Part shown: positions 1 to 22,255 of the stretch, in pieces
Position numbering within the stretch: the first letter of the stretch is position 1
Layout of the letters: each line of letters begins with the position of its first letter
Assembly: GCA_002269645.1 (NCBI GenBank)
Contig: NIVC01005127.1
Span: 1-25,453, forward strand
DNA from: Macrostomum lignano
Taxonomy: Eukaryota
Direction of reading: 5' to 3'
Length of the DNA stretch: 25,453 bases
Notes under the pieces: model-generated
The model's database searches: none
What the model was told of the DNA's origin: nothing
What the model saw: only the letters and a program-made list of their open reading frames with translations
Program-made: the position numbers and the translations under genes

Positions 1-11
1 GGTAAAATGAT

Positions 12-285
12 CTGAAGGACAGGAGAGGGGAGGAAAATAAAACCTGAAGGACTGTAGGAGAGAGGTAACTATAACCTGAAGGACTGTAGGAGAGGGTAAC
101 TATAACCTGAAAGGACTGAGGAGAGAGGGTAACTATAACCTGAAGGACTGTAGGGAGAGGTAACTATAACCTGAAGGACTGTAGGAGAGGGTAACTATAA
201 CCTGAAGGACTGTAGGAGAGGGCAACTATAACCTGAAGGACTGTAGGAGAGGGCAACTATAACCTGAAGGACGGTAAGCTGAAGG
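12..285. repeat. 31-bp tandem minisatellite (ctgaaggactgtaggagagggtaactataac) in TFIP11 intron 1
   Basis: ctgaagg recurs at 140, 171 and 202 (31-bp period); about 8 copies with scattered indels; lies beyond the TFIP11 donor at 412. Confidence 0.95.
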
Positions 286-412
286 ATTGAATGATACACC
301 TGAAGCCTGAAGAACCAGAGGGTAGCGTCGCGTGATTGAAGAAGGTCCGAGAATTGCAGGGAAACGGAGTTATAATTCACTCCACAATTGCATTGCAATA
401 GACAGAACAAAC

Positions 413-1265
413 CTTGACTTTGGCGCCATTGTCTAGCACTGGCACGCCGCCTGGCGCTTTTTTAGCTCCGTCCCGTAGAATCTCTTCTCGTGTTTTTATG
501 GCGTACCTTGGCTGCTGCTGCTGCTGACTTCGCTTGTAGCGGGCTGCAGCAGCAAGTGAGGCGGCTTTGGCGGTCGCGTCCGTCACCGTCTCTTCGTTGC
601 CGCGCCTGGGCACCGGCGCCGATTGTTCGGGATAAAATCCCACAGCCTCTTTGCCTTTGCGCTTTGTAGCCTGAACGGGAGTGACAATACCAGCTAGGTC
701 TTTGCCGAGGCCTTTGCCCTGCTTGTAGCCCATCTGCTCCAGCAGCTTCATGCCGATGCCGCGGGTGTGCCGCTCCCAGTGGCCGAAGCCCTGCTCCGCC
801 TGGGCCTGCTGCTGCTGGCGCTGCCGATCATTGGCCGACTGTTTTGGCCGCTGCGGCTGCCTGCGCTCGCCTGGCGCCTGCTCGATCAGCCGCACCTCAG
901 CATCTCCTCGTCGCTCTCATCCGTGATGTCGCCGCCGCCAGCTTCATCAGCCGCTGCTCCTCTTCCTCCTTCATCGTCATCATCATCCATGGCCGACTGG
1001 CCGCCTTTGACGCCGCCGCTAACGAAACTGATGGGACCGCCGGCTCGGTCTCGGCCGGCTCCGCGCGCCGCGGCGACGCCGGTTGCCGAAGCCGCGGCGA
1101 TTGCCGAAGCGTCATCGTCGTCCTCGTCTTCGGAGTCGCTGGCGAACACGCCCGCCCAAGCCTGCTTCTTGGACATTCGGCGCCGCTGGGCCAGCGGTCC
1201 ATGGAATATTTCCAATCGGCCCCCGTCATGTCGAAGCGCTCCATCTCTTCTTCATCGTCATCCAT
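413..1265 (-). CDS. TFIP11: Tuftelin-interacting protein 11 (Ntr1/Spp382 orthologue, G-patch), coding exon 1; gene continues off the left edge; two 1-nt deletions near 1215 and 897
   Basis: Three frames join into [17 protein letters not shown] / [22 protein letters not shown]...PISFVSGG / [51 protein letters not shown]...[10 protein letters not shown]...KVK. This matches recalled TFIP11 motifs ([32 protein letters not shown] G-patch, PKYSYKT, VKVIDMTG). Donor AAG|GTTTGT at 413/412; 853 nt + 2 = 285 codons. Confidence 0.92.
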
Positions 1266-1374
1266 TGTAGGTTGTGCGCTTGGGCGTTAGCGGCTGCTGG
1301 CTGCAATGTTCAGTGAGCGGGTAGGTGAGGGGTCAGCGAGTGCGCTCAAGTTCTCACCTGCGATATCTGAAACT

Positions 1375-1715
1375 CCAGTAATTCTCCAGCCTAGAACTGA
1401 AATATAAATCTACGAAACCAGTAATCTCCAGACTAAAACTGTAATATGAATCTACAAAACCTGTAATTTTGAATCTAAAACTGTAATATGAATCTAGAAA
1501 ACCTGTAATATCGAATATAAAATTAATATGAATCTACTAAAACTGTAATATCGATCTAAAACTGTAATATGATTGAATCTACAAAACCAGTAATCTTCAG
1601 CCTAAAACAGTAATATGAATCTACAAAACCGGTAATATCAAACTCAAAACTGTAATATAAATCTCAAACCAGTAATCTCCAGCCCAAACATGTAATTCTA
1701 GTCTAAAAAAACCAG
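1375..1715. repeat. Degenerate ~21/42-bp tandem repeat between DNAJC17 and TFIP11
   Basis: gtaat core recurs every 20-22 nt (1421, 1441, 1463, 1483 ... 1672, 1692) with a 42-43 bp dimer structure. Confidence 0.85.
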
Positions 1716-1845
1716 TAGTAATAGCATCGAAGACTATTTCTTTACAGTCTTAAAGTCGTTACAGGGTGTAAAATCACTAAGGACTCGATACATCTATCTA
1801 ACGTTACAATCGGCCATATTAAAAAAACTAGAAAAATATTAACAG

Positions 1846-1851
1846 TTTATT
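1846..1851 (-). terminator. Putative polyadenylation signal AATAAA of DNAJC17
   Basis: tttatt on the + strand, about 120 nt past the stop codon at 1971-1973. Confidence 0.6.
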
Positions 1852-1970
1852 ATTTACTTTCTAATCGTAGTAAGAAACTGTATAAATGCAATGTATTTGA
1901 CTTTAAAACAATATACATGCAGCATAAAATCAACTGATCAGAATGCCACAAGTTGAGTGCTATACACATA

Positions 1971-2881
1971 CTACTGATCATCAGTAGGCGCAGCAGATGC
2001 AGCATTATCATCATCCGTACTATTCTTATCGTCGCCAGGATGAGCGCGTTTGCCACGCGAAAACATTTTAATTAGATCGTCGGCTGTCACTTTGCGCAGC
2101 CAATCGCCAGACGGTCGGCCCTGATTGGTTGGCAGCCAATCGCCTGTAGTGGCTGCCGATGCGGCAGGAGGCACGGGAGTCTGCTGGTGCTGCTGCTTCT
2201 GGCCCTGCAGCCACACAGCCGACAGTCCACCTTGACCCGCTGTCAAGGCCTTGACCAACCTGTCCGCGTCGTCGTGTCTACGAAACTCGACAATAGCGAC
2301 ACCACCGCTGCCACCGCGACTGGATTTCTTACTACTAGCCTTGCCCGGCCTGTACAACAGGGTGACCACCTCGCCGAAGCTGGAGCACAGCGACTTCAAA
2401 GAGGCCTCCGACTGACTAGAACAGTCATCCTGATCTCCACGCCAAGTCAATTTTATTGTCGGCAGATTGTCTTTATCCTTGTCGGCAGCCGCCTGTCGGA
2501 GCTCCTGCCTGAGTAGCTCCTGCTCCCTAGCCAGAACGTCGTTCAGCTCCCGCCTAAGCCGCTGCTTCTCCCTCTCTAGGCTGGCTTCATCCTCCTGTCG
2601 GCTCCGGCCGCTTGCAGACGTCGCACTCTCAGCGGCAGCTGCAGCAGCTTCGGCTGCCTCAAGTTGCTCTTTGAATCGGCGCCGGCCTACCCGAGAGCCC
2701 GGGCCCGCTCGGCGGCAGCCTGACGGCCACGGCGCACTTTATCGTAGGCAGCTCGGGCGGCTGCGTCAGTGAGCAGTTGCAGAGCCTCGGACAGTCGACG
2801 GAAACGTTGAGCAGCCAGCGGATCGTCTGGATTTTTGTCCGGATGAACTTTGAGCGCTGCGGTGCGATAGGCTTTGGTGAT
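1971..2881 (-). CDS. DNAJC17: DNAJC17 (J domain, coiled coil, RRM-like domain), coding exon 2; one 1-nt deletion near 2685-2693
   Basis: Acceptor cctgatag|ATC at 2882/2881. Reads [51 protein letters not shown] (HPD motif; human KAYRQKALSCHPDKNPDNP...[15 protein letters not shown]). After a -1 correction: [12 protein letters not shown]...LPTIKLTW...FGEVVTLL...VAIVEF. TAG at 1973-1971. Confidence 0.92.
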
Positions 2882-3038
2882 CTATCAGGGGATGGATTAG
2901 AGAGGTTTAGTTAGCACCTTAGGTAAAAAGCTGGAGTAAAAATGCCTGTATTTTAGTAAACCGATCCCTCGCCATCTAATTAGTTTGCAATGGGCCTTTA
3001 TTTCAACTTTATTATTCACAATTGAATGCACAACTTAC

Positions 3039-3110
3039 CTCCTTTTCTGTAGCATTCTCATCAATGTTAAGTAGTTTATATAAATCTTCATTTTGTATTG
3101 GTGTATCCAT
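3039..3110 (-). CDS. DNAJC17: DNAJC17 coding exon 1 (24 codons)
   Basis: MDTPIQNEDLYKLLNIDENATEKE matches J-domain helix I (human MDLYALLGIEEKAADKE). Donor GAG|GTAAGT at 3039/3038, phase 0, in frame with exon 2 across a 157-nt intron. Confidence 0.9.
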
Positions 3111-3125
3111 GTTGGAGCTGATATC

Positions 3126-3148
3126 CTGAAGAGCTAAATAGCAAATCA
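3126..3148 (-). promoter_or_regulatory. 3' splice acceptor 15 nt upstream of the DNAJC17 ATG (5'-UTR intron or trans-splice acceptor)
   Basis: Minus strand ttgatttgctatttagctcttcag|gatatcagctccaacATG. Confidence 0.5.
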
Positions 3149-5346
3149 ATAAACTATTAACACATGTTCAAATTAGTAAGCTAGCTTGAAATAAAATTTC
3201 TTTTTAATATACATAGATAGAAACATACAGTTAAAAATATACGTATAGAATATTCATTCCTAATATTACTCAGTAATTTAAAGTAAAACAGTTTTATATA
3301 AATAGTTAGTGTGATATGCTATGCAAGTCTAGAGTTAACTATCTATTTGCTTTTACAAAGTATTTTTGTAGTCTAAAGACCAAGACCCTTGCAAACATAG
3401 CTTGCAAAGTTGGTTGCAAAAGATTCAAATACCATTTTTTCTTTTTTATATTTGTTCTTCATGTCTTTATATCTTATATTAGCATTTAGGCCCTGAAATG
3501 TATTCTATGATATTGTTTTTATCCTTCATAACTTGCTTGACTGGCTAAAAACATTTTATTGTATTTGTTGCTGCTATGATTTATATTATTATTTGTGAAA
3601 GTTTTTCTTATGTAAAAATCTGTGCAATTTCATATCTGCAAATATTTCTTAGGAAAAATTTGTCTTATTATATATATTTTCCAAAATATTCTAGTGAAAA
3701 TACCAAAATCAGCAGTAGACAACTTAGATATCAAAGAATATACATATGTAGGGGCCTATAGAATACTAAAAGCCATGGCCTTCTAACTTTAATAATGTAT
3801 AAGACTAAAAGAAATATATATGTAATATATTTAGTAGTAATAGCAAAATACTGCTTAGGCCTATATAAGAATGCTATTAGTACAGAACAAGAACACATCA
3901 ATAAGAAATTAAAAATACTTAGAAGTATTTTATATATTTTTAAATCCAAGGCATATTTATTAGCTATTAGCCTCTTTCTTAGTTTAAAACTTTTTTAACT
4001 AAATTTTTCTTTTTTATCTCCTGCTTCACCCTAATTTTTATTGCCTTTCTAGCCTAAAGTTAACCATATAAATATATATTTTAGTGAATGGGCTAATATA
4101 CAATATTGCTAAACCAATTAGTAAGTTGTTTATATTAATAAGCTTTGGTTAATGAATTTTTCAAAGTTATTTTAGCTATTTTTATTTTTATAAAATAGCT
4201 TATATAGGCTACAATTTTTTTCTAGTGAACTGAAAATAGAAAGCTGTTTTACTAAGTATATATGTCTAAATTATAAATGGCCTATCTAGTTATTTTAGAA
4301 ATTTAGTATCTATGCTAATAACTTAATAGAATTAGTTGAAACTAATAAAATATTGTGATAACTTTTATATCAATATTTTAAAGTTAAATTAATGTGATAT
4401 AAAAACTTGTGATAGCTACCTTTGATAGTAGAAATATAATTTTGTTAAGATAAAGTACTAGCCTTAGGCCTATTGTATGTAAAAATTTTAAATTAATAAA
4501 TTAATAAAAATCATTAAGAAGGGTCTTCTTACATTAAGATTTGAATTCTTTATAAGGCCTAATTAGAATTTTAAAAGCTAAAGTAAAACTCAATATGTAA
4601 TTTATAAGCTTGAAAATTTTTAGAATATATAAAATTCTAAAATTGGTAAACAAAATGACTTTCTACATATATAACATAGAATGATAGATTGGCCTATAAC
4701 AAATAAAATATGGCAAAAAATCATTGACATTTGTCAAAGATAAAATTAGAATAGATGTGTAAGCTTATAGTATGATTAGGTGGGCCAGGCCTATTAAGTT
4801 AGGCCCTAGCTAAGCAACTTAGACTAGGCGGCTAGGCCTATGTTTGTATTTTTGATAGTTTTATATCTTTTTTTCTTATTCTGGAATCTGGATTTAAAGG
4901 CCTATTCCTAGGCTATACAAAGTATTATAGGTCTACTTTAGATGTTTAGAATATTATTGATAATATTTATGACTGCCACTGTCAGCAGTGCCAGCCAAAA
5001 AGAATAGTTAGGCCTACTAGTATTCATTACTATGCCAATGCCATCATTACTATATTACTACATATTACTAGGCCCATGCTATGCCTTCATAGGGGCACCA
5101 TCATTACCACACCCCTACAAGGGGCAGGGGGCAGGTTACTACCCCTCTTGCCTTCCCTTTCCCTTAAATCTGTCCCTAGTAGCCTACTAGATATAGACAC
5201 TATCAATATCAATCGAAAAGGCACACAAACTAAAATGCTAATAAAAATAAAAGGAACAAATAAAATTTATTGTTATCATAGCCCATAGGCCTAGCATACT
5301 AGATCCATGACTGTACTAAACCCATATGGGCTCATGCCTGCCTGCC

Positions 5347-5811
5347 CGTGTAGGCCGGATGTAGGCTATATTATATATACTTGTTAGGTTGTCGATGGTA
5401 AGCTTTTGGAGTGTAATTTTCGATGAACTGTGAAATTTCGATGGATTTCAAATAATTGTCTACATAAAGACATTTGCAATAGAAATAATTCTGTGCGTAA
5501 TTATAGTAAGCAGGCCTAAATTAGAAAATCATAAAAATGCAGAACCGTTGGCGTAGGTGCTAGTATTTTAGTAAGACGTTTGTTAATATAGTAACTTTTA
5601 AATTTATTGAAAAAGAAAGGAAAGCGATTAATGCTTATCGCTTGATAATATTAAATGTCAAACTAGGCTGGCTGAATAAACTGGGTAATCCTACCACAAA
5701 TAAATGCATTAATTACACTTCAAGTTAAAAACTCTAGATAATTTTTAAAATAAGTTTTAGTAATAAAGCTTATGTCGATTCCAGACTATAATATTAGCAA
5801 CATGAAGTACG
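5347..5811. promoter_or_regulatory. CpG-retaining segment inside a CpG desert; candidate bidirectional promoter for DNAJC17 and XPO7
   Basis: Manual count: 13 CpG in 465 bp, versus 2 in 3244-5346 and about 8 in 5812-10300; lies between two divergently transcribed genes. Confidence 0.4.
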
Positions 5812-6459
5812 TCTAGATTTTTGCAAGTTGCAACATTTTCTTTCTGGCATTTTCCCAACCTCACTAAGTTTAGTTGGCTCTCAGTTGGCTGAAAATTGTT
5901 TGTTTTATTCCAGAGCCAAAACACTTAACTTTTAACATTTCCATGTTATTATCACTTTAACTATCAATGTGAGAATCTATCATTTCATTATAGATAGGCC
6001 TAAATTTGCTAAAATTATAATTATATAGGGGCCTAGTATCTAGACGGTTATATTAATAATAGTAATAATAATAATAAAAATTTAATATTGAAATTCAATT
6101 GTTTTATCTTTGCTACTATATAATAAATATTGTTTGTTTAAATAGGCCTATCCAAATAATTATTTGATTTTTTTCTTATTAAAAGCTAAACTTAGGCTAG
6201 GCCTAGGTAAAAAAGTGCTAGGCCTAATCAAATTTTGCTTAAAACAACTTATTCTTAGTAGGCCTATTTATAAGATTCAGCCTAGCAATTCCTAATCTTT
6301 GCTCAAAATTCTTGTTTTTATCTATATCTAAATGATCAAAATAAAAATCAAACATTTTAAACAAATTCTAAACCTTAGCTTTAGTAAGATGCATTATATT
6401 ATATTACATTACAATGACACTAGGTTTGGAAGGTGCTAGCGCATAGGCCTATACAATTA

Positions 6460-7110
6460 TGAAAAAGAAAGACAAGATAGATTGCAGCAGTCTAGGAGGT
6501 CAGTCCAATTGCCTTCAAGTTGGCAACAAGTGTCTTTTAGAGTGTCTGGTTCTGCCCTTAGCTGCACTAAAACCATTTGATCAATGGGTACAGAATGGCT
6601 AGTCTAAATGGGTTGTTGTTGCCATGGGCAAACTACCATAGGCAGTGTCTTAGCAAGGCCTAGCAATGTTGGCAGAGCATGGCACTAAGGGATGGCAATT
6701 TTGATCTCTCTATCAGCTGGGCTATCAGGAAAACAGCCAAGTAGTACAGGCCCAACGCTTTATGTAGCAGGTTGTAGAGCATTGTATCAAGGGCCCGCTC
6801 TCATGTAGTTGTCATTGGGATAGCCTCTATGCCATAGAGAAGGATTGGCTCTATGGTGGCATAGAACAAGTAGATCTTCAGGTTGTCCTATACTTTGGAG
6901 GTAAAGATTGGCCTAAGATGGTGCATGGCATACCAGGCCTAGGTCCTCTTATCTATAATGATCGCCTCTAGGCTTATCACAAGGGTGCCTAGATAGTGGA
7001 AGTTGCTGTACATGATTAAGATGGCCTTGCCATTGAGCAGGGTCAGTGGTGGGGCATTGTTAGTACCCATATGCAGTACCTCTGTCTTGCCTGCATTAGT
7101 TCATGTAAAG
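6460..7110 (-). mobile_element. 5'-truncated, inactivated non-LTR retrotransposon (RTE-like LINE): end of RT domain and C-terminal region
   Basis: One minus-strand frame from 7097 reads NAGKTEVLHMGTNNAPPLTLLNGKAILIMYSNFHYLGTLVIS...*AWYAMHHLRPIFTSKV*DNLKIYLFYATIEPILLYGIEAIPMTTT*ERALD. This carries the N..KTE(V), F.YLG, AW..L..I, KI.LF...VE.ILLYG.E motifs of RTE-type ORF2; 9 in-frame stops. Confidence 0.85.
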
Positions 7111-10100
7111 ATACATTAGGCTATATTTAAAGTTTGTATATATAAGTATATATATAAATTTAATAATTGATATTTAGCTAGGTTTTTTATGTGCACTGCA
7201 AAGTATGCATATTATACCATCTTTGAGTTTTAAAATTGCACTCTAAAACTAACAAAGTGGGTATAGTTTAGGTATCATTTTATAAGTTATTTTCTTTTTA
7301 AGCCTCATTTGTAATGCCTTAGAATAAGATCAAGAAATATGAGACAAGAAGTCAAGGCATATATATACAAGATAAAAAAACAAGACACAAGAAAATATCC
7401 ATAAATATGTTTATATTCCTAATTTTTTTAACTAAGAGAAATTGCATTCACTGACTCAGCCTTATAATTGCACCTTGAAATTGGGTACAAAGTGCAATTT
7501 TATGTCTTATCTCTTATAAAACTATATTTTTAGCTTGGAATTGCTTATTATTCAAATTTAAAACAAAATAAAACCAATGTAACAATGCTATGATTCAGGC
7601 ACAAAAATGGTGCAAATATAGGTACAAATGCCTTTTTGCCTTTGTAAGAGATGATATTTGGATAAACATAATCATTTAAGTTCTATCTTTGTATTTTTAC
7701 TTTTATCTTATTGTTATTGGAGTAAATAGGACCTAGCTGTGGTTGCTACTACAAGTGCATGCTAATTATCTTTTTGACCTTATGCCATTTACCAATCTTG
7801 GGAGTCAGGACTATTTTAATCATTTACTTTAGTACTGGACACTAGGCTTTTATCTTAGCCCAATATCTGCCAGTATTTGTGCTTGACATAGAGATTAGCA
7901 ACTCGGAAGGTGCACTTCTACCAATTTCACCTGAAAGAGACACTAGACAAGCATGGATATCACAATTGACTTCTAGAGCTACATTGCTACTGACACTGAT
8001 AGAGATTGTCCTCTCTTACTACATTTGGTCTAAGTATTGCTTGTTTTCCCCCATGATAATGCAAAGATGGAATGTATATTTAGCCAAAATTTAAAACAAA
8101 AACTTTTAAAATGCCCAATATATAATAATGCATGCAAAAATATCTCATATGACATTTTTAGGGGTTGTAAAGAAGCAATCTAGAGGATAATATTAGCATT
8201 GTGCAAAAATTTTTGCCTGGCATAAAATCAGGTAAAATGTCTAATTATAGCACTGCAATCCAATAAATATAGGCCTAGCAGTATTTTTAAAATGATACAT
8301 TATGGCTGATAACTAAAATACTATATATATAATCACAATAGTTTTGAATTTAAATACAAATTACTTTTTATAACCACCAAAGATGTTTTTTCTTAGCTTT
8401 TAATAAACATATTTACATTGTTTAAATAATTAAGACTTAGATATAAGTTATATACTATACTAAACTTTAGTTATAAACTAGGTTAAGTAATATAGATAAT
8501 ATTATTTACTTAAGACCAAGTTATTCTGCAATAATTTTTATTTAAATAAGAAGATTATATATAAGATAATCAGAAAACTGAAAACTGAAATCAATAATAG
8601 AATTTTTCTCCCCAAGTATAAAATTATATTATATAGGGGTATATATCCATAATACCTTCCAAGCTAGCTAATCTAGCTAGCTAGCAAAAGACCTAGCCAA
8701 GGTAAGTTTCAAAATGCCTATTCAAAAGATATAGAAAAAGTATTTAAATAGATAACAAAGCATTTGGCTTTAATAATATAGTCATTATTATTTTTGACAT
8801 GTACCTAGAAAATTACATTAATTTTAGCTTAGGTTTCTTTCATACATATAGATTAGTCATTTTTTTGGTCAAAAAATAAATCAGGGGGTTATATATATGT
8901 GTTATGTGTAAAAGATTTTAACATGAAAATAAATATAATTGACATATTAGTTATTCTAGACATGTGGAGTCTCAATCAATGTCAAAAAGTTTGTTGGAGT
9001 GTATTGGCAGAGCTACAACTAAAGTTGGTATTGTCAATGCAGTTTAGAATAGAAGCAGCAATTCTATTATCTTAAAACCTGATGCAAAACATTGTCTTTA
9101 CTAAGTAAAAAGCGAACAATGAGGCATCATTCATCAACTGCACTTAAATTTGGCCTTAGTATTGTCTTAGTAATTTTCCATGCAGTTAATATAAATACAA
9201 TGTTTTTCTCCATTGCATTCCATTTTTCCAATGTGCATTTTTCCATTGCACATAGAAAGCAATTTTGTGATAGACTACCAAATGCATATAGTTGCATGTC
9301 AAAGTATACTGACCATTCATCATTATAAATCATTATGCTAAGTTTTATAAACTTTTCAATGATTAGTAAAAGGGTAAGAATATCTTATGAGACAATGGGC
9401 CAAATAATATCATTGCAAGATAAATCACCACATTCTACTATTCTAAAAATCCAGATCTAGGTACCTTTCTAAGAACCTTGATAGTATTTGAGCTTTCTAC
9501 CAAAAGGGATTTGTCAATCTCATAAGGCATTTTATAGGGCATTAAGCAGGTGTAAAAAATAATTCAAATGATTTCTAAGATTAGCATCTTAATTCTTAAT
9601 GATACATTTCTAGCCTTTATCTGTCTAAAAAGTTATTTTTCAATAAAAGTTAAAATTTAATAGTTAAAAGTTGTTCTGTCTATTAAATCTTTTAAAATTT
9701 GAATTTGAATTTAAAATATTGATAGTCTTTTGTTCCTCAAAGGTAAAATTGCATCTAGGGTTAGATTTTAGGTTATAATTTTAGAATTTTTTAATGTTAA
9801 GTCTATATATGCACAATTTCCAGTGCAATTACAATTGACAATATTAACAAATTAAGGACTTTTACTTGTTTTTGATAAGCTACTAAACTAAGTCACATTT
9901 TCAGTCAAAACTTAGTCTTATGGCTAGTGTAATTTTAGAATTTGTGCATTTATAAATAATATAATTTATAAAACTTTATAACACTTTTTTCAGTAAAGTT
10001 GATGCAAATAAGTATTTGAAGTATAAAACGAATTTTAATTATATGTTTGCTTTATGCTTTTATTAAAAACAAAAATAGTTGATTTTTCTATCATTGCTAG

Positions 10101-10322: not shown

Positions 10323-10820
10323 ATGGAAGTTGAGCAGGTTGAGCTGCTGTGCAAGCAGCTGTATGAGACGCAGGATGCTTCATTGCGCTCAGAGGCTGAG
10401 AAAGCGCTAGTGAACTTGACCAATGATCCATTGTGCATGTCAAAATGTCAACTGCTGTTGGAACGGGCCAATTCTCCCTATTCTCAGCTGGTTGCCAGCA
10501 ACAGTCTCACTAAACTGCTGTCAAAGCCTTCGCTTAGTCTGTCAGTTGAAGAGCGCCTAGAGATGCGCAATTATGTGCTGAGGTACTTAGCCCAGCATTC
10601 TGGCAAGCTAGTTAGCTACGTGCAGCAGAGCTTGGCCCAGCTGTTCTGCCGTCTGACTCGGCTGGGCTGGTTCGACTCGGACAGTAAAGAGGATTGGCCG
10701 TTTCGCAATGTTGTTCAGTTAATTACTAATTTTCTGCAGAGACCGGACTCGCAGCATGTGCTGATTGGAGTGCAGCTGCTTTCACAGTTGGTTGCCGAGA
10801 TGAATACGTTTGCTGATCAG
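10323..10820 (+). CDS. XPO7: Exportin-7 (RanBP16/17 family) coding exon 1
   Basis: [29 protein letters not shown]...KCQLLLERANSPYSQL...RNYVL...LGWFD matches human [24 protein letters not shown]. ATG in aaacATG context; donor CAG|GTGAGC; 166 codons. Confidence 0.95.
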
Positions 10821-10879
10821 GTGAGCATGTTAGTCACTTGGAAGTCATAGGCCTTCCAATGCAGTTACAAAATAGGTTT

Positions 10880-11462
10880 CTGTTAATTAGTGTGCTGGGT
10901 CCAGGTGTTCTAATGAGTTTGCTATGCTAGTTGTGCAAAAATAGTTATTTGCCCTAATTCTTTGCTAGATGTGCTAATTAGTGTGCTAGGTGCTCTAATT
11001 GTTGCATTAGGTGCTTTTATTTGGTGTGCTAGGTGTTCTAATTGGTGTGCTAGGTGTTCTAATTGGTGTGCTAGGTGTTCTAATTGGTGTGCTAGGTGTT
11101 CTAACTGGTGTGCTAGGTGTTCTAACTGGTGTGCTAGGTGTTCTAATTGGTGTGCTAGGTGTTATATTTGGTGTGCTAGGTGTTCTAATTGGTGTGCTAG
11201 GTGCTCTAATTGGTGTCCTAGGTTCTCTAATTGTTGCATTAGGTGCTTTTATTTGGTGTGCTAGGTGTTCTAATTGGTGTGCTAGGGGCTCTAATTGGTG
11301 TGCTAGGTGCTCTAATTGGTGTGCTAGGTGCTCTAATTGGTGTGCTAGGTGTTCTATTTGGTGTGCTAGGTGTTCTAATTGGTGTGCTAGGTGCTCTAAT
11401 TGGTGTGCTAGGTGCTCTAATTGGTGTGCTAGGTTAGGTGCTCTAATTGGTGTGTGCTAGGC
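10880..11462. repeat. 21-bp minisatellite (ctaattggtgtgctaggtgtt) in XPO7 intron 1
   Basis: More than 20 near-identical copies; gives 7-aa repeat ORFs (CARCSNW, GVLGVLI). Confidence 0.97.
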
Positions 11463-11616
11463 TTCTAGCGCAGGGTGTATTAGTTTGTTACGCTTTCAAA
11501 ATATACAATATTCATAAAATGGAAACATCAGGCCTTTATATCGCTTTTTTACTAGCTACTACTACTGTTAGTACTAAGCTTTACCTCGCCATCTGCCTAA
11601 TTAACCTCTCCTGCAG

Positions 11617-12378
11617 GAGTCCAGCCGCTCCCTGAGCATGCACAGGAAAATCGCTTCCTCATTCCGCGACTCTCAGTTATTCGAAATATTCCGACTCGGC
11701 TGCTCTCTGCTACGCGACGCGTCCTCGAATTTGAAATCGCTCAGCAGCTCGGTCGCCGATCCGTCATCAACCGAGCACAATCTGCTAGCGCACACGCTTC
11801 GCCTAGTAAAGAACTGCTTGAACTTTGATTTCATCGGCACAGCTGGCGACGAATCAGCCGACGATTTGAGCACCGTCCAAATACCGACCTCTTGGCGGCC
11901 GGCCTTCTTCGATCAGGACTGCGTACTGCCCGGCCTGTTCTTTGAGCTGTTCTCCGGATTGCCTGCCAGCCTGGCTCCGCTGTCCCTGGCCTGCCTAGTC
12001 CAGGTGGCCTCAATCCGCCGCTCCCTGTTCTCCAATGCCGAACGGGCCGCATTTCTTAATTCGTTGGTTCGCGGAGTTCGCGACATTCTGCGCAATCCTG
12101 TTGGTCTGAACGATCCGTCGTGTTATCACGAATTCTGCCGACTGGTTGCCCGGCTCAAGTCTAATTATCAGCTTGGCGAGTTGGTTCGGATTGAAGCCTA
12201 TGATGAGTTTATTAAACTCATCGCCGATTTTACTGTTCGCAGCTTGCAGCTGTACAATTTTGGATCGAATAGCGTGCACTATCTGCTGTCTCTATGGCAA
12301 CGCATGGTCGCTTCGATACCGTATTTGAAAGTTACCGAGCCGCACTATTTAGAGGCCTATGTGCCAGAGATTGTAACG
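11617..12378 (+). CDS. XPO7: Exportin-7 coding exon 2
   Basis: Acceptor cctgcag|[25 protein letters not shown]...CLNFDFIGT...TVQIPTSWR...[21 protein letters not shown]...[12 protein letters not shown]...YVPEIVT. Donor ACG|GTATGT; 254 codons. Confidence 0.96.
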
Positions 12379-12437
12379 GTATGTTTATTTGTGTTGGTTG
12401 TAATTGCCAAAATTTATTGGTTCTCCAAAGCAGGTCG

Positions 12438-13520
<1,083 letters not shown>

Positions 13521-13643
13521 GCTGAAGTCACGTAGGCTGAAGTGGCTGAAGTACTTTGTCTCTGCTGTCAAACCCAAAGTTGCTTCCCATATCCTAGACC
13601 TAAACACACACAGTTAAGTAATGCCAAATTGCATTCCCAACAG

Positions 13644-14183
13644 GCCTACGTGACCTCCCGAGTGGACTCCGTATCGCTAGTGTTTCGCGAGGGCCTCGAG
13701 CAGCCCCTGGACGATGTGAATTTGGTCAGCCAACAGTTGGAACAATTAGCTACCATTGGTCGTTGCGAATACGAGAAAACTGTTCAACTGCTTGTACAGT
13801 TATTTGACCAATCAGCTTCGGCCTATAGTCAGGTGATGCCGCTGGGCGGTACAGATGTACTTGTGCAAGAGTGCAAACTGGCCTGGCTGACCTATTTTAT
13901 GGGCGCCTGCGTTGGCGGCAGGATATCCTTTAATTCAACCGATGTTCACGACGAATTGGACTCGGAGCTCTGCTGCCGGGTGCTCCAACTGATGCGGCTG
14001 GCCGACCAGCGGCTGCCCCACGCTGCTCACAGGCTGGAGCTGGCGTTTCTCTACTTTCTAGACCAATTTCGCAAGATCTACGTTGGCGACTCGGTGCAGA
14101 AGGCCTGCAAAGTCTATAGAAGAATGGGCGAAGTATTGGGCATAGCAGATGAGAGTGCGATTCTGGCTGTGTTTGTTACTAAG
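13644..14183 (+). CDS. XPO7: Exportin-7 coding exon 3 (ends at a GC donor)
   Basis: Acceptor caacag|GCC. AYVTSRVDSV...LATIGRCEYEKT...LFDQSA...GGRISF...FRKIYVGD...VFVTK. Donor AAG|GCAAGT; 180 codons. Confidence 0.93.
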
Positions 14184-14220
14184 GCAAGTGTTTTGCTATT
14201 GTTCTTCCTAGAAAGGCTAA

Positions 14221-14640
14221 GGGGGGTCACCTGACCCCTTTTATAAAGACAAGTGGTTTAACGATTCTCAAGAATTCCCAGGGGTCAGTGACCCCTTCCA
14301 GAAGTACAAGTATTTCGAAGATTCTCGAGAATTCCAGGGGTCAGTTGACCCCTATTAGAAGTACAAGTGTTTCCAAGATTCCTAAGAATTCCAAGGGGGG
14401 TCAGTTGACCCCTACCAGAAGTACAAGTATTTCAAATATTCCCAAGAATTTCAAGGGGGGGGGGGTCAAGTGACCCCTTAGAATTTCAAGTGGTTTGATG
14501 ATTCCTAAAAAATTCCAGTGGTCACGTGACCACCATAGGAGTTCAAAGAAGGTTTAAAGGGTCTGATGGACCCTCCCTAAGAAATCCGAAGGTCAACTGA
14601 CCCCTCCCCCAACAAGTATAGGGGTCAGGTGTCCCCCTAA
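14221..14640. repeat. Degenerate ~56-65-bp tandem repeat, each unit carrying a GGGGTCA-N1-2-TGACCCC palindrome, XPO7 intron 3
   Basis: Palindromes start at 14223, 14281, 14337, 14397, 14462, 14519, 14590 and 14621. Confidence 0.9.
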
Positions 14641-14773
14641 GAAATACAATACGTGAAATGATCTCCAAATTGGGTCTAGATATCAGACTATCTCGGTGTA
14701 AAATCAAGGGGTCATCCGGCAATAACCAACGGTAAAAGTCCTAACAATTTTTTTTCAATCAACAAACTCTCAG

Positions 14774-15256
14774 GTAATAGCCAATCTAAAATTCTGGAGC
14801 CACCACGAGACCATCATAGGCCGCACATTGGCCCTGCTCAGCGATCTCAGCGCCGGCTATTCCGCAGTGCGCAAACTGGTCAGACTAGAAAGCGTCCAAT
14901 TCGTACTGGCCAATCATTCCGCCGCGCATTTCCCGTTCCTCAGCGGCCAGGAGACCCTGCCGACTAGGCTGAAATTTCGCACCTCATTCTATGCCGCTCT
15001 GGGCCGCCTGCTGATGGTCGATCTGGGCGAAGACGAGGACCGATTCCAGGCGTTTATGCAGCCGCTAACTGACGCATTCTCTAATGTTGGCAATTTGCTC
15101 AATTCAAATCAACTGCAGGAGGCTCAGACTGGCCTTGTTGGCTTGGCTAGAGATCTGCGCGGCATTGCGTTCAGTTTGAATACTAAGACTGCCTATATGA
15201 TGCTGCTGGATTGGTTTTGCCCGGACTATTCACAGCTTATGGTCAAGGCGCTTGAG
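14774..15256 (+). CDS. XPO7: Exportin-7 coding exon 4
   Basis: Acceptor ctctcag|GTA. VIANLKFWS...DLSAGYSAVRKLVRL...ALGRLLMVDLGEDED...LVGLARDLRGIAF...KALE. Donor GAG|GTTTGT; 161 codons. Confidence 0.95.
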
Positions 15257-15276
15257 GTTTGTGGCCGTTTACACAT

Positions 15277-16165
15277 TGCCTCTCTCTCCCTCCCAGCTCA
15301 CTATCTCCCTCTATCCCATTGTCTCCCTCTCCCATCTCACTGTCTCCCTCTATCCCATTGTCTCCCTCTCCCATCTCACTGTCTCCCTCTCCTATCCCAC
15401 TGTCTCCCTCCCACCCTCCCATCTCACTGTCTCCCTCCATCTCATTGTCTCCCTCTCCCATCTCACTGTCTCCCTCTATCTCATTGTCTCCCTCTCCCAT
15501 CTCACTGTCTCCCTCTCTCATCTCACTGTCTCACTCTCTCATCTCACTTTCTCCATCTTCTATCTCAGTGCCTCCCTCTCCTATCCCACTGTCTCCCTCC
15601 CTCCCTCCCATCTCACTGTCTCCCTCTATCTCACTGTCTCCCTCTCCTATCTCACTGTCTCCCTCTCTCATCTCACTGTATCTCTCTCATTTCAATGTCT
15701 CCCACTCCTATCTCTCTGTCTCTCTTTCTCATCTCACTTTCTCCATCTTTTATCTCAGTGTCTCCCTCTCATGTCACTGTCTCTCTCTCCCATCTCACTG
15801 TTTCCCTCTCCCATCTCAATCTCCCATCTCACTGTTTCCCTCTCCCATCTCACTGTCTCTCTCATTTCAATGTCTCCCACTCCTATCTCTCTGTCTCTCT
15901 TTCTCATCTTACTCTCTCCATCTTCTATCTCAGTGTCTCCCTCTCCCATCTCACTGTCTCTCTCATCTCACTCTCCCTCTCCCATCTCACTGTCTCCCTC
16001 TCCTATCTCTCTCATCTCACTGTCTCCCTCTTCCATCTCACTGTCTCCCTCTCCTATCTCTCTCATCTCACTGTCTCCCTCTCCCATCTCACTGTCTCTC
16101 TCATCTCAGTGCCTTCCTCTCCTATCCCACTGTCTCCGTCCCATCTCACCGTCTCCCTCCATTAT
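15277..16165. repeat. 21-bp CT-rich minisatellite (ctccctctcccatctcactgt), XPO7 intron 4
   Basis: About 40 degenerate copies; nearly stop-free in all + frames, giving artefactual 321-506 aa ORFs. Confidence 0.96.
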
Positions 16166-16280
16166 GTGTCTATCGATCCATATCCCGCCTCACACTGTTT
16201 CCTGTTCTTCGATACTACAAGTAGTAAAGCTAGTACTAGAACAAAAATTTAATACCGAACTAAACAACTCCGGATGGCAG

Positions 16281-16903
16281 GTCTGGGGCGCCTCCCCCGA
16301 GGTGACCACCCCGATCCTGAAGCTGTACGCCGAGGTGGCGCAAAACCGGTCCAACCGGCTGCAGTTCGACGTGGCCAGCCCGGACGGTGTCCTCCTGTTC
16401 CGCGAGCTGTCCCGGGTTGTCTGCACCTACGGCGAAGGCCTTCTGGCCAGACAGCCGCCTAAGGAACGAATCTATCATCACAAGTTGAAGGGCATCGCTG
16501 TCTGCTTTACTATATTGAAAGCAAGTCTATCTGGCAACTATGTGAACCTTGGCGTATTCAGTCTGTACCAGGACCAGCATTGGACTCTGCGCTGTCTGTA
16601 TTTGTCCGCCTATTGCTCAGCGTTGAACAGACTGAACTGTTGCAATATCCGAAACTGTCTCAGGCTTATTATCCTCTGCTGGACTGTCTGGCTCAGGACC
16701 ATGTGTACTTCTTGGCCGGCTCCGAGCCCACTGTCTTTCTGTACGTGCTGCAATCCGTTCACGATGGCCTGACTTCTTCCGATACTCTGGTCTGCTCGGC
16801 TTGCTGCGCTGTGCTCGATAGTCTGCTCAGCTTCCTCTTCACCTGTCTGCAACGGCGCGGCAGACTAAGGCCTCGGCAAAGGGAGGCGTGCGATCGAATG
16901 CAG
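16281..16903 (+). CDS. XPO7: Exportin-7 coding exon 5; 1-nt deletion near 16575; ends at a probable GC donor
   Basis: Acceptor ggcag|GTC. VWGASPEVTTPILKL...NRSNRLQFDVASPDGVLLFRE...KLKGIAVCF...LSGNYVNLGVFSLYQD, then after a -1 correction ALDSAL...YPKLSQAYY...QDH...CSACCAVLD...CDRMQ. Donor CAG|GCGAGT. Confidence 0.9.
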
Positions 16904-16939
16904 GCGAGTTGCTGCGATGCTTGGATTTGGAAAAATATG

Positions 16940-17345
16940 AGGAGTTCTGGTCCGCTATCAGTATTTATTGGTTGCCATGGGGACTTCTGGGTTGCTATGG
17001 CGATTTATTGGTTGTCATGGGAAATTCTGGGTTGTTATGGGGATTTATTGATTGTCATGGGAAATTCTGGGTTGCTATGGCGATTTATTTGTTGTCATTG
17101 CTAATTCTGGGTTGCTATGGGGATTTATTGGTTGTCATGAGAAAATTCTGGGTTGTTATGGGGATTTATTGATTGTCATTGGAAATTCTAGGTTGCTATG
17201 AGGATTTATTGGCTGTCATTGCTAATTCTGGGTGGTTATGGGGATTTATTGGTTGTCATGGGGATTTCTAAGTTTCTATGAGGTTTTATGGCTCTATGAG
17301 GATGTTTGTTTTGCTATGGGGATTTGAATCGATTATGGAGTTTAA
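16940..17345. repeat. 40-bp (2 x 20) minisatellite, XPO7 intron 5
   Basis: Blocks gaaattctgg gttgctatgg ggatttattg gttgtcatgg repeat with period 40 and decay toward the 3' end. Confidence 0.93.
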
Positions 17346-17565
17346 GAGTCACTATTCGGATTTATTGGTTAATGTATAGATTTGGAGATTGATGATATGG
17401 AGACTTCTAGGTTGCTATGGGATTAATAATCGCTTTGTATAAATTTTCGTGGATTCGGTTTGGGAACCTTCTATGAACTATTAGGGCTATTATCGAGTTA
17501 TATATAGAGGATTTCTAAATGGTTAATATATTAATAATCGCGCTTGCAATTATCCGCCCACGCAG

Positions 17566-17934
17566 ACCAGTGTCCAGCCCCGCCTGCTGGAGCAGCTGCT
17601 GGTCACCCTGCTCAACATTGTGGTATTCGAAGATTGCCGGCACCAATGGAGCCTGTCCCGGCCGCTGCTGCCGCTCATACTGCTAAATGAGAAATGCTTC
17701 CAAGAGGTGCGCGCCTCCATCATCAGCTCGCAGCAGTGGGGCGGCGGCCAGGCCGGGATGGAGCGGCAATCGGCCGTGTCCGCCTGTTTCGACAAGCTCA
17801 TGGAGGGCGTCGAGCGGAATCTGCTGGTTCGGAATCGGGACAAGTTCACCCAGAATCTGTCGCTGTTCAGGCGGGACATTGGCGACGCGTTGAAAGCCGC
17901 CCCGGCTGTTGACCTTGGCAACGAGATGTCCTGA
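17566..17934 (+). CDS. XPO7: Exportin-7 coding exon 6 (terminal)
   Basis: Acceptor cacgcag|[45 protein letters not shown]...[30 protein letters not shown]...NEMS*. The joined protein is about 1091 aa, similar to human XPO7. Confidence 0.95.
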
Positions 17935-17952: not shown

Positions 17953-19204
17953 TAACAGGACCGACTAGGCCAAAAACACAGGCGTCAGAGACTTGTCGCT
18001 TTCCTTTATTCATAAAATCCCGTCCCCTCTGTTCTCTCTAATCTTGGCTTTAGCACCACCTATCAATTATGTGTGTTATTTCACAGAAAGCTGGGCTGCT
18101 TCGCTTCTATGAAAAATATGTTTTTTGAAGGCTCAAAGTAGCAAGCATTGAGCCTTTGAAAATTTCTTGAAACGATTTGCCTCGTCTTGTCTACTTACTA
18201 ATAGTACACGGTTTGAATTTGTATTTAATCTACATGAAAAAGGTGTGTATTATAATGCCTAATGCTAAGTACTTTTTAATGTCCATAAAAGGCCAGTAAA
18301 TAAAAAAATTATATTTATTACGCCTAAGTACATTGTTAATGTACATGTTCAAGTGTACAGATTGCTCACACACTGCGGTGACGTGCAAAATGCGCCCACT
18401 AAATTTACATATTTTAGTATAATTTAATTATCAAAAAATGCTTCATATTTCCTGTGTACTCTATGGTTATTTTTGCAGGCATTGAGCAGTGTACATCATG
18501 TCTAATGTCTAGTTTCTGGCTGCAGGTCGATATTCTGTAAAAACAATTTCTTATTTAGTAGGTTAAAAAACGGTGAGTAGCTTTTTTGCTTTAATCTTGC
18601 TGTATTCAAGTTTGGCACAAGTACAACTAGTTACATTCAAATTAGCATTTCGGAAGAAATTCTCTGCCCGAAATTGCTTTGAGAGAGACACATAGAGATT
18701 GTTCCCGACTTATAATGTGCATTATGGTTTTACCCCTGATTTGCAACTTATTGATGCCATCAACTGCAAGAAAGATTTATTACTGTCAACCGACTGCTTC
18801 ACAGACCCCCTGTTTGGGCCATAGACAGGTGAACAGCAAGTCTTTAGTAGCTTGGCTCTCCCGCAAAGGATTGAACTGCTTGCACCTAGGTAAATGCTAA
18901 ATTTCCGAGTATCTATAATCCGGTCCTCGGGTCAATTAATAAGCATATTTTTTCTTGTCTGATTTTTGCTGCTCGCGTGTTAGATTATTTTGTGTCTAAA
19001 AATTGCTTCTTTTATTATCCCTTTCCATTTGTTCAACTGTCTGTATTCATTGATTTTATTGTAACACGCGGTCTGTTAACCATTGCTGTTTGCTAACTAT
19101 TATATTAATCTATTGTTGGAACTTTGCCGTTCAATACCTGTGCCCAAGTTGTCAAGCGGAAGGATTTTTCTCAGTTGCTTCTTCTATTATATAGGATCAC
19201 TTGG

Positions 19205-19617
19205 ATTGAATCTAATCCAAGATTTGTTTGCAATGGAGCTTTTGTCTATGGTGGCAGGGCTGCCACAGCGGCATTTAATTTGGTCCATAGCGGCTATGAA
19301 ACCCAATCATGAGTCACAGTTGTGTAATGCAATTTATTGAAGCAAATTTCACTGTGCCAACGCAAGGTGACGTCAAAAATTCAAAGAGCAAAAAGCCCAT
19401 GGCATTTGTTCAACAGTCTGGCATAATGGTCCACGATTCTGGGGCTTATGAAGCACCGATTTCTTGCTCACTGCCTGTGACAGTCATGTCTAAATGAAAA
19501 TCTAGGGGTGAAACTGCAGAGCAACTATGGGACCAAATTAGATGCCGCTGTGCCAGCCTTGCTACTATAGACAGAAGCTCCGTTACTTTGGCAAACGTAT
19601 CTTGGATTAAATTCAAT
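19205..19617. mobile_element. Diverged ~100-bp inverted repeat pair (19205-19299 / 19516-19617); MITE/foldback-like remnant
   Basis: attgaatctaatccaagat...ggagcttttgtctatggtggcagggctgccacagcggcatttaatttggtccatag aligns at roughly 80% to the reverse complement of the second arm; the ORF track also shows LNLIQD...QRHLIWS on both strands. Confidence 0.6.
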
Positions 19618-20475
19618 GCGTGTAGGCCCAAATGGACTGAAAAATGCTGTACTGCCTTTGTCTGTTATAGCTACTCAATGAAAATGCGCAACACGTAGGT
19701 CGGATTTATAATAGATATTGATTAGAGAGGTTGGGCCATAGACAGCAGAAACAGTGAGAAACAGAGGTCATTGTGCTCCTACGCATGCGAATAAGCGCAT
19801 GTACGCTGGCGCACACTGGCTCACATAGGTTGTACAGCGGTCCTGACTGTCTTATCTGTCAGTCATGTACACTTTTTTGGCCCTCCAATCTAGCGCTTCA
19901 GAACTTAAAACAATCAAACGACTGCATTATTGTAGTATAGCTTGGCCAGACAAAAGCCAATCACCTTGGCATTTTGCCTGCTAGATTGAATCCAACATGG
20001 GACAAAGGTTTGGAGAATGCCGTATTGTGCATATTTATTGAGTTATCACTTGCCACCGAAGCCCGCGTGTGTGGTTTCGTTGTCTGAAATTCGATTTGTA
20101 TTTTTTCTACTCAAGGCCGAGTTGCTCGAGTCCGGTCCCCACCGATTTATCTCCTCTGCCCCGACTACAGGAGCAACCAGCAACGCTTGTTCGGTCTCTG
20201 TTTAAAAATGCATTTACTTCTATTTGTAGTAGTAATAGCGGTATAAACTGTAATGACAAGTTCGCCCGAGGCTCTTCTTTAATGAAGAAAACAATAAATC
20301 AAATAAATTATAAATTGGATGCGCAGCCTGTGCGCGTGCGTATCTGAAATTCGGATTGAGCGATGACTGACTTTGAAAAATACTTGTTTTAATTAAATGC
20401 GTGTCCAAGTGTGGTCTGTTCTATTTATTCGATTAGTTTACATTCACAAGTCAGGCAGAAGAACAGGGCAGGACG

Positions 20476-21184
20476 GACAGGACCAGCTTACACAGATCAT
20501 CGAAGACAGGAACAGCTGACATATCATAGGGAGACAGGAACAGCTGACATATCATAGGAGACAGGATCAGCTGACAGATCATAGGAGACAGGAACAGCTG
20601 ACATCGTAGGAGACAGGACCAGCGCACATATCATAGGAGACAGGACCAGCGCACATATCATAGGAGACAGGACCAGCGCACATATCATAGGAGACAGGAA
20701 CAGCTGACATATCATAGGGAGACAGAAACAGCTGACAGATCATAGGGAGACAGGAACAGCTGACAGATCATAGGAGACAGGAACAGCTGACATATCATAG
20801 GGAGACAGAAACAGCTGACAGATCATAGGGAGACAGGAACAGCTGACAGATCATAGGAGACAGGAACAGCTGACAGATCATAGGAGACAGGAACAGCTGA
20901 CAGATCATAGGAGACAGGAACAGCTGACAGATCATAGGAGACAGGAACAGCTGACAGATCATAGGAGACAGGAACAGCTGACAGATCATAGGAGACAGGA
21001 ACAGCTGACAGATCATAGGAGACAGGAACAGCTGACAGATCATAGGAGACAGGAACAGCTGACAGATCATAGGAGACAGGAACAGCTGACAGATCATAGG
21101 AGACAGGAACAGCTGACAGATCATAGGAGACAGGAACAGCTGACAGATCATAGGAGACAGGAACAGCTGACAGATCATAGGGAG
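20476..21184. repeat. 27-bp minisatellite (ggagacaggaacagctgacagatcata) between XPO7 and the kinesin
   Basis: About 25 copies; gives a 9-aa repeat ORF (MICQLFLSP) on the minus strand. Confidence 0.97.
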
Positions 21185-22255
21185 AAGGAAGACGGGAATT
21201 TTTTATGTTTTAAGGATTGTCTCTCAATTTAGTCAGAAAAAAGGTGCAAGCAAATAGCTTTACACCACTTTCTCTTCACAATTGCGAGTTAAAGATGTCT
21301 GTCTCATATAAACACGAGCGTATATCTATATATATATCTATATCTCGTATGTCTAATTGAAATCAGACATTATTTACAAACCTAAATTAATAATCTCCCA
21401 ACAGGGAATATTGTATCTGCATGGCAACACCATTCTGTCTAGACCATACAAAATATGCAATGAAGGGTGACGATTTGTACTCGTATTTATAGTTTGCAGA
21501 AATATGGGAAATTTGGCAACCAGTTCCCCGACATTTCTATCCAATTTAATTGGCCTTTCTGAATGCTCCTCCCTGTGCGCTGTTTAAAGCCTGCTGGCTA
21601 GCTGCTGGAAACTCTGTACTCATCCTGTGCTCTCTAAATTCTCTTCCCAGAAGCAGCTGCAGTGCTCCAGAAAAGCTCCTAGAGACCGTGTCGCCCAACC
21701 CCTCCCAAGCTTGTACTGCCGACCGGATCGCTCACCCCATGCCTCCAGCTCCTTAGCATTGCATTCTCCCTCATCTCCCAGCCTCTCCCCTAGCATTGGT
21801 GCAGAGGTTATCTCCCCGCCCCACACACGCACGCCTGTGCACGGGACACACTGCATGGCATCCACTTTCAAAGTGCTGGCGCCGCCGCCAGCCTCTCGCG
21901 CCGCTGAAACCTCCCGACAGCTCAGCCCCATCGATTTTCCTGCCCCTTCGGCTTTCTCTCTCTCTTGGCTGCACTTCCCCTCCCAGCCTCCCCCAGACCG
22001 TCCTATCTGCATGCTAGATGAAGCGCTTAGGACTGGCCCTATCAGTGCCGCTGGAGCCCGCAGACGTCCCACGTAGTAGCGAAGCCTGCAGGACAGACAG
22101 TCGGACAAAGCGAACGGCCCTGGTGGTGTGTGTGACACGTGTCTGCATGCCCGCCTGCCGCTGCTGCTGCCTCTGCAGCACAAGCCAGTCTGTTGGTCTA
22201 TTTTCTTCTATTAGTATTTTAATAACAGACTTATAGACTCGGAACTCCTAGGGTC

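Follow-up and report, generated by a model that had tools for sequence, protein, structure and literature searches.

The genes for DNAJC17 and TFIP11, the animal counterparts of two yeast spliceosome-disassembly factors, follow one another on the minus strand of a 25,453-nucleotide stretch of the genome of the flatworm Macrostomum lignano (contig NIVC01005127.1, assembly GCA_002269645.1; hereafter the window), and the present data make it about an even chance that they form a polycistronic, two-gene operon resolved by spliced-leader (SL) trans-splicing. The original prediction had described a same-strand tandem in which DNAJC17 extends from 3110 to its stop at 1971, TFIP11 starts at an ATG at 1265 and continues to 413, and 705 nt separate the two, and each of these coordinates was reproduced. 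The spacer, from the DNAJC17 stop codon to the TFIP11 ATG, occupies 1266..1970 and contains no open reading frame (ORF) with a family match, so that the two genes are same-strand neighbours with no intervening gene, as an operon requires. It is by far the tightest gap between genes in the window, the others measuring about 7.2 kb and 5.9 kb. In NCBI the two proteins bear consecutive accessions, PAA73417.1 (DNAJC17) and PAA73418.1 (TFIP11), with a contig of 379,945 bp given for each, and the genes therefore adjoin in the NCBI annotation of M. lignano as well. The locus is one more candidate among the thousands of M. lignano operons; what gives it interest is the identity of the genes and the fact that a copepod gene model shows them paired again in a second phylum that uses SLs.

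The model proposes that RNA polymerase II, having started at the DNAJC17 promoter, would read across the 705-nt spacer into TFIP11, and that the upstream mRNA would be cleaved and polyadenylated shortly past an AATAAA at 1846-1851. The 35-nt SL would be trans-spliced just upstream of the TFIP11 ATG, best at a TTGCAG| acceptor with the exon start at 1300, and would thereby release the downstream mRNA. A minisatellite within the spacer would be neutral filler of the kind that inflates M. lignano intercistronic regions. Occasional use of the same acceptors in cis, with a cryptic donor in the DNAJC17 stop codon, would then give rise to the chimeric J-domain/TFIP11 gene models that are considered below.

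Evidence for transcription across the spacer

In M. lignano, about 30% of genes receive the 35-nt SL and about 15% have been assigned to operons (PMC8629364), and multi-gene precursors make up almost 7% of the transcripts assembled (PMC5730564). Operons have been called in this species where genes share a strand, lie less than 1 kb apart after adjustment for repeats and show SL addition to the downstream member; the spacers are inflated by repeats, and the repeat-subtracted distances peak near 100 bp (PMC8629364). In the spacer examined here, a 42-nt minisatellite (1375..1696, minus strand; 7.7 copies, 79% matches) takes up 46% of the length, and subtracting its 322 nt from 705 leaves 383 nt, which is below the 1-kb limit used for M. 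lignano and above the 300-bp limit applied in parasitic flatworms (PMC12582326).

Co-transcription, as the original prediction proposed it, finds indirect support in published M. lignano gene models that cis-splice the end of DNAJC17 to acceptors near the TFIP11 ATG. Two UniRef entries of the same protein cluster, both named “J domain-containing protein”, are of this type: A0A1I8FY55, with 1118 aa, combines DnaJ, TIP_N, G-patch and GCFC domains, and A0A1I8FZF6 has 354 aa. Both use a GT donor at 1970..1971 (CAGTA|GTATGT, minus strand), the G of which doubles as the final G of the TAG that ends DNAJC17. In A0A1I8FY55, an in-frame chimera, the donor is joined to a CCCAAG acceptor at 1279..1284 (minus strand; exon start 1278, 13 nt before the ATG), and in A0A1I8FZF6 to a TTGCAG acceptor at 1301..1306 (minus strand; exon start 1300, 35 nt before the ATG). 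When the window DNA is spliced from 1972 to 1278 or from 1972 to 1300, the exact junction peptides of the respective models are obtained, and the models thus treat 1971..1279 and 1971..1301 as GT..AG introns, of 693 and 671 nt. Within the PAA73418.1 cluster the chimeric entries occur in UniRef only, and the 90% cluster also holds PAA73417.1. Should RNA data underlie the chimeric models, the two genes would have a common precursor; such a basis is plausible because both models begin with untranslated 5' sequence without a methionine and because one is an out-of-frame extension of 14 residues. Chimeric flatworm gene models have been read as signs of polycistronic precursors, with acceptors often common to cis- and trans-splicing (PMC12582326).

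The acceptor motifs predicted downstream of the AATAAA are present, although most of them prove to be copies of a single repeated unit. The trans-splice acceptor motif of M. lignano is [T/C]TNCAG (PMC8629364), and ten matches lie in the spacer; at least seven (TTACAG) are copies of one minisatellite unit, each unit carrying TTACAG or TTTTAG on the gene strand, and a TTTCAG at 1402 also falls in the array. The unique, GC-rich 109 nt immediately before the TFIP11 ATG contain two such motifs against 0.19 expected (P about 0.012), namely an acceptor-like TTTCAG at 1367..1372 (minus strand), 101 nt upstream of the ATG, and the TTGCAG at 1301..1306, which fits the motif, is used by A0A1I8FZF6 and is the best candidate SL site for TFIP11. 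An SL ending in ATG would be out of frame with TFIP11 at all three acceptors, which argues neither for nor against its addition. The M. lignano SL itself (CGGTCTCTTACTGCGAAGACTCAATTTATTGCATG, 35 nt, searched with up to three mismatches) is absent from the window, as expected, and an Rfam scan of the window returned no RNA families and hence no SL RNA gene. Upstream of DNAJC17, an acceptor-like CTTCAG at 3126..3131 (minus strand), 15 nt before the ATG, also fits [T/C]TNCAG (PMC8629364), and if an SL with a terminal ATG were spliced to it, that ATG would share the frame of the DNAJC17 ORF (M-DISSN-MDTP...). DNAJC17 may thus be trans-spliced itself through this site, in which case the operon, if real, might begin further upstream.

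Several observations weigh against co-transcription. The chimeric models may be artefacts of gene prediction. The transcript-cluster prefixes of the two genes differ in the Mlig_3_7 annotation (Mlig017391 vs Mlig019197), so the genome-guided assembly did not obviously join DNAJC17 and TFIP11; the M. lignano authors describe transcriptional units that are split within repeat-rich operon spacers (PMC8629364). The spacer, at 705 nt, exceeds the usual operon mode of roughly 100 nt sevenfold and is well above the 300-nt cut-off for parasitic flatworms. The AATAAA at 1846..1851 (TTTATT on the plus strand; minus strand, 119 nt after the stop codon) lies where it had been predicted and is the sole A[AT]TAAA of the spacer, but as a candidate DNAJC17 poly(A) signal it does no better than chance, because 45% of shuffles of the AT-rich 274 nt after the stop codon contain at least one such hexamer; it was accordingly discarded as evidence. 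In addition, a donor-like GTGAGA stands at 1357, 9 nt past the TTTCAG of 1367..1372, and the GC-rich 109 nt can also be read as a 5' exon of TFIP11 itself followed by a 57-nt intron (CAG|GTGAGA at 1357 to TTGCAG| at 1301), which would imply an upstream non-coding exon and an independent transcription start site (TSS). Finally, the partner gene was not found at 11 other loci in flatworms, a rotifer, annelids, molluscs, a nematode and others (flanks of at most 10 kb). Searches of the literature and supplementary files for the Mlig gene identifiers, for DNAJC17 together with TFIP11 and for tuftelin together with spliced leader found no mention.

Some of these observations favor an alternative that is a real possibility, if a little short of an even one, namely that the locus holds two independent transcription units. 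DNAJC17 would then end near 1825, and TFIP11 would have its own promoter or TSS in or just downstream of the minisatellite, with a 5' end that is either capped or trans-spliced from a short outron of its own, and the adjacency would have no transcriptional meaning. The differing prefixes, the long spacer, the possible 5'-UTR (untranslated region) intron and the lack of a neighboring partner elsewhere all fit this scenario. However, it has to accommodate two published models that splice across the spacer at exact GT..AG sites, a repeat-adjusted distance that falls within the M. lignano operon range, and a salmon-louse model in which the same gene pair is fused.

Identity of the two genes

The upstream gene had been named DNAJC17 in the original prediction, and its domains and best matches bear this out. 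Coding exon 1 (3039..3110, minus strand; ATG at 3110) comprises 72 nt, or 24 codons (MDTPIQNEDLYKLLNIDENATEKE), and encodes the start of the J domain; this N-terminus aligns with DNAJC17 orthologues and is present in PAA73417.1. It is followed, in phase 0 after codon 24, by the sole intron (2882..3038, minus strand; 157 nt, GT..AG), the position of which equals intron 1 of annelid orthologues as judged from tblastn exon breaks at the Ridgeia and Capitella loci. Coding exon 2 (1971..2881, minus strand) encodes the rest of the J domain with its HPD motif, a coiled coil, an RNA recognition motif (RRM) and a divergent tail that ends in a TAG at 1973-1971. The window translation is 100% identical to PAA73417.1 (BOX15_Mlig017391g2). 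Pfam DnaJ is matched at 8.6e-22 over residues 9-71, giving a J domain in which H37-P38-D39 are invariant across the orthologue alignment. The RRM_1 match is marginal (E 4.4e-4, 20.5 bits vs a cut-off of 20.7); the region nevertheless agrees with orthologue RRMs column by column (K169, W172, G195, E224, W249-L250) apart from an 11-residue insertion. The best database matches are mollusc, annelid and vertebrate DNAJC17 (about 40% identity, E down to 1.4e-35), and every protein named DNAJC17 falls within the top 25 matches, whereas other J-protein classes match at E 1e-11 or worse and through the J domain alone. The conserved C-terminal helix (DFExIVLMKMRQAxER...) is not recognizable in the M. 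lignano protein, as the tail aligns weakly and the motif is absent from the other frames. The gene keeps the first intron only, compared with about 10 introns in annelid orthologues, a case of extensive intron loss, and its GC content is 29% in exon 1 vs 59% in exon 2.

The assignment of the downstream gene to TFIP11 is equally secure in its domains (TIP_N and G-patch) and its best matches (TFIP11). Coding exon 1 (413..1265, minus strand; ATG at 1265) runs through TIP_N and the G-patch up to ...GAKVK and ends at a donor GT at 412-411, past which homologues read on as ...KVKVIDMT. The start of intron 1 (1..412, minus strand) is occupied in part by a 31-nt minisatellite at 12-276. Pfam places TIP_N (4.7e-9) ahead of the G-patch (8.6e-15), the core of which is invariant in the homologue alignment, and the TFIP11 database matches are to trematodes and a monogenean. 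Across the alignments of the two proteins, all conserved residues of the J domain, the RRM and the G-patch fall into place. When the G-patch part of exon 1 was used in phmmer, the top match (P0170) was M. lignano PAA73418.1 (BOX15_Mlig019197g1, 821 aa), at 97% identity and E 4.5e-91. The rest of TFIP11, including GCFC, lies beyond the window start; the 97%-identical M. lignano sequence does have GCFC, found at 3.8e-39 in P0319, which holds the full TFIP11. Exon 1 covers TIP_N and the G-patch uninterrupted, and in Opisthorchis a 4.7-kb intron separates the two, a further instance of intron loss. Over window positions 1050-1110, PAA73418.1 reads a stretch in a differing frame, with the NCBI version closer to the homologues; two additional indels, each offsetting the other, must therefore be present in either the window or P0170.

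The reading frames of both genes are interrupted in the window, a point absent from the original prediction. TFIP11 loses its frame at a CC run at 1196-1197, where ATGGACCGCTGG is read and homologues require ...MD-PL..., and again within 889-922, and in DNAJC17 one base is missing from the GGG run at 2690-2692. With three breaks in about 1.8 kb of coding sequence, the two could be decaying pseudogenes, or their juxtaposition could be an artefact of assembly. This is highly improbable, however, and a pseudogene reading of the frameshifts was rejected, as like defects occur in other genes of the window and the NCBI proteins are intact. Exportin-7 (XPO7; 10323..17934, plus strand) is broken at 16569-16585 (LYQDQ|ALDSAL) within highly conserved, contiguous sequence, and the motor of a kinesin-3-like gene, of which the window holds only the start (from about 23800, plus strand), is broken twice, at about 23880 (23872-23896; KSFQF|SYWSH) and at about 24176 (24170-24178; MEIYCER|). 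Three of the breaks (TFIP11 1196-1197, DNAJC17 2690-2692 and kinesin at about 24176) fall in short homopolymer runs. PAA73417.1 reads through the 2690 site as ERARALGVGRRRF with 100% identity on either side, and the adjacency of the two genes is independently present in the NCBI and UniRef protein sets. The breaks are best read as single-base indels of an under-polished long-read assembly, because XPO7 and the kinesin share them and M. lignano proteins read through. With indels in every gene of the window, gene prediction on this assembly is expected to be fragmented.

Conservation of the pairing

The partnership on which the original prediction built is borne out by the literature: Cwc23 attaches to Ntr1 through the C-terminus of the latter, and the two assemble with Ntr2 into a stoichiometric heterotrimer (PMC6044358), and DNAJC17 has been called the vertebrate orthologue of Cwc23 (PMC5958099). 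The literature searched yielded no functional link between DNAJC17 and TFIP11, and an interaction between the two in animals would be an extrapolation from yeast.

The adjacency itself, which the original prediction had proposed to check in relatives, was not found within limited flanks in parasitic flatworms (three species), a rotifer, annelids, molluscs or a nematode. Synteny was examined by tblastn of both proteins, with flanks of at most 10 kb and several short contigs; one GC-rich, flatworm-like TFIP11 contig (L010) was left out as too short. In Opisthorchis viverrini (2.1 kb available), Paragonimus kellicotti (10 kb), Cichlidogyrus casuarinus, Rotaria and a eukaryotic ENA contig (L003), no DNAJC17 turned up upstream of TFIP11; in Ridgeia, Capitella, Gigantopelta, Aplysia, Toxocara and one further eukaryotic genome (L011), the 10 kb downstream of DNAJC17 held no recognizable TFIP11. 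In C. casuarinus the upstream neighbor of TFIP11 is a mitochondrial-carrier (Mito_carr) gene on the opposite strand. In P. kellicotti (LOND01029316.1) TFIP11 is itself divided, its N-terminal half (TIP_N and G-patch) and its C-terminal half (GCFC, 568 aa) being annotated as AHF37_07960 and AHF37_07961 on opposite strands, probably through a scaffold inversion or mis-join.

A different picture emerges from the salmon louse. TFIP11-type proteins in which the G-patch is displaced from the N-terminus were sought among 150 phmmer matches, and the single outlier was “TFIP11 [Lepeophtheirus salmonis]” (P0284, CAB4066231.1). DNAJC17 sequence fills residues 83-258 of this protein (33% identical to M. 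lignano DNAJC17, BLASTP E 2e-23), and the TFIP11 start MANEEEVMPFEITDQDL follows directly after, in the same order as in M. lignano, in what is a gene model only. A glutaredoxin-like (DUF836) segment at residues 25-70 precedes the DNAJC17 part, which suggests that annotation has run together a row of three genes on one strand, and the model leaves out the J-domain exon with the HPD motif. Among louse expressed sequence tags, 5' ends resembling an SL have been described (PMC4664967). An over-long Haematococcus TFIP11 model, taken as a control, is fused to an unrelated GTPase. By our own estimate, a specified gene would be the upstream neighbor by chance in roughly 1 in 10^4 genomes, and one case in a few dozen full-length TFIP11 models is therefore unexpected. 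A non-random linkage finds indirect support in the louse model, where the pair is fused in the M. lignano order.

It is against this background that selection may be considered. The pairing could have been kept for dosage balance between two stoichiometric partners, brought about by co-transcription or by a regulatory domain common to both genes, an explanation that is compatible with the operon mechanism. It is judged unlikely, though to be taken seriously, and it is placed that high because the pairing recurs in the copepod model. Order and strand are shared between the flatworm and the copepod gene model, a louse case among a few dozen full-length models would not be expected by chance, and the Haematococcus chimera indicates that fused models normally take in arbitrary neighbors. 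However, the adjacency is absent near TFIP11 at the five loci and near DNAJC17 at the six loci listed above, the louse pairing is known from a gene model alone, and a direct interaction of the animal proteins is not documented in the literature searched. Moreover, M. lignano has thousands of operon pairs, and chance would be expected to bring interacting products together in a few of them. In human and yeast, the two genes lie on different chromosomes, which likewise counts against selection. The strongest form of the proposal, that DNAJC17-TFIP11 would be a recurrent SL-resolved operon, found in flatworm and copepod and arisen or kept by the coupling of two stoichiometric subunits of the NTR complex (Ntr1, Ntr2, Cwc23 and Prp43 in yeast), is rather improbable.

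Comparison with known systems

The locus most closely resembles the SL operons already described in M. lignano (Wudarski et al. 2017, PMC5730564; Ustyantsev & Berezikov 2021, PMC8629364), with which it shares the species, same-strand neighbors, a repeat-filled spacer that is below 1 kb once adjusted to 383 nt, and a [T/C]TNCAG near the downstream ATG; the two also belong to the conserved housekeeping genes, a class in which SL trans-splicing is enriched. Unlike those operons, it has a raw spacer (705 nt) far longer than the mode of roughly 100 nt, its transcript-cluster prefixes differ, and it is known here from sequence alone. Candidate operons of parasitic flatworms (e.g., cytochrome b-c1 subunit 7 / enolase; PMC12582326) are likewise dicistronic, are fused by annotation into chimeric models and have acceptors common to cis- and trans-splicing. 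However, the present pair exceeds their 300-bp threshold, neither gene name was found in the supplementary files searched, and Opisthorchis, Paragonimus and Cichlidogyrus showed no DNAJC17 beside TFIP11 within the flanks covered.

With respect to the yeast NTR complex (Ntr1/Spp382, Ntr2, Cwc23 and Prp43), the window genes correspond to Ntr1 (TIP_N, G-patch, GCFC) and to Cwc23 (J protein). Yeast Cwc23 and Ntr1 bind directly and are stoichiometrically balanced (PMC6044358), whereas the animal pair is known here from its genes. DNAJC17 differs in having an RRM, which budding-yeast Cwc23 does not, and in the flatworm protein a divergent tail stands in place of the conserved C-terminal helix of its orthologues. 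The yeast Cwc23 and Ntr1 genes are not known to be linked. The SL2-type operons of Caenorhabditis elegans provide a further parallel, as there, too, a polycistronic precursor is resolved by upstream 3'-end formation coupled to downstream trans-splicing, as would be the case here, and most are two-gene operons of housekeeping genes, like this pair. The flatworms differ in possessing a single SL type without a specialized SL2, and nematode spacing is about 100 nt. We know of no linkage between the C. elegans DNAJC17 and TFIP11 orthologues. Lastly, conjoined or read-through gene models are represented by A0A1I8FY55, A0A1I8FZF6 and CAB4066231.1, which fuse neighbors by skipping the upstream stop codon or terminal exon; unlike the usual case, the same gene pair is fused here in two phyla, and the acceptors lie at the positions expected for SL addition.

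Other features of the window

Introns and intergenic DNA of the window are crowded with minisatellites, which are unrelated to one another and have periods of 21-57 nt, and with a 1.1-kb (AGAT)n array. Besides those at 12-276 and 1375-1696, repeats occupy 10963-11434, 12440-13520, 14219-14460, 15283-16159, 16963-17325, 20476-21190, 22996-23810 and 24489-25450, and several of the arrays yield long spurious ORFs. Coding exons have a GC content of 51-65% vs about 25-36% in the 7-kb intergenic region between DNAJC17 and XPO7 (3000-10000). The interval between XPO7 and the kinesin gene (18000-23000) contains GC-rich ORFs on both strands (e.g., 21620-22183), for which no Pfam matches were found.

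Significance

Should DNAJC17 and TFIP11 prove to be mere neighbors, the locus would be an ordinary one that mainly illustrates how predictors fuse closely spaced genes when flatworm assemblies are rich in repeats and errors. The grouping of genes in animal operons is usually ascribed to expression level or germline use and not to the binding of their products. If true, the operon proposed here would be a rare animal example with content shaped by direct protein-protein interaction, joining two subunits of one spliceosome-disassembly complex, and it would be of further note if two lineages with SL trans-splicing had it in common or had each evolved it. It would provide a concrete test case for dosage-balance selection on operon content, in a species for which transgenesis and the mapping of SL and poly(A) sites are already established, and would suggest a partnership between DNAJC17 and TFIP11 in animals, for which the literature searched holds no record.

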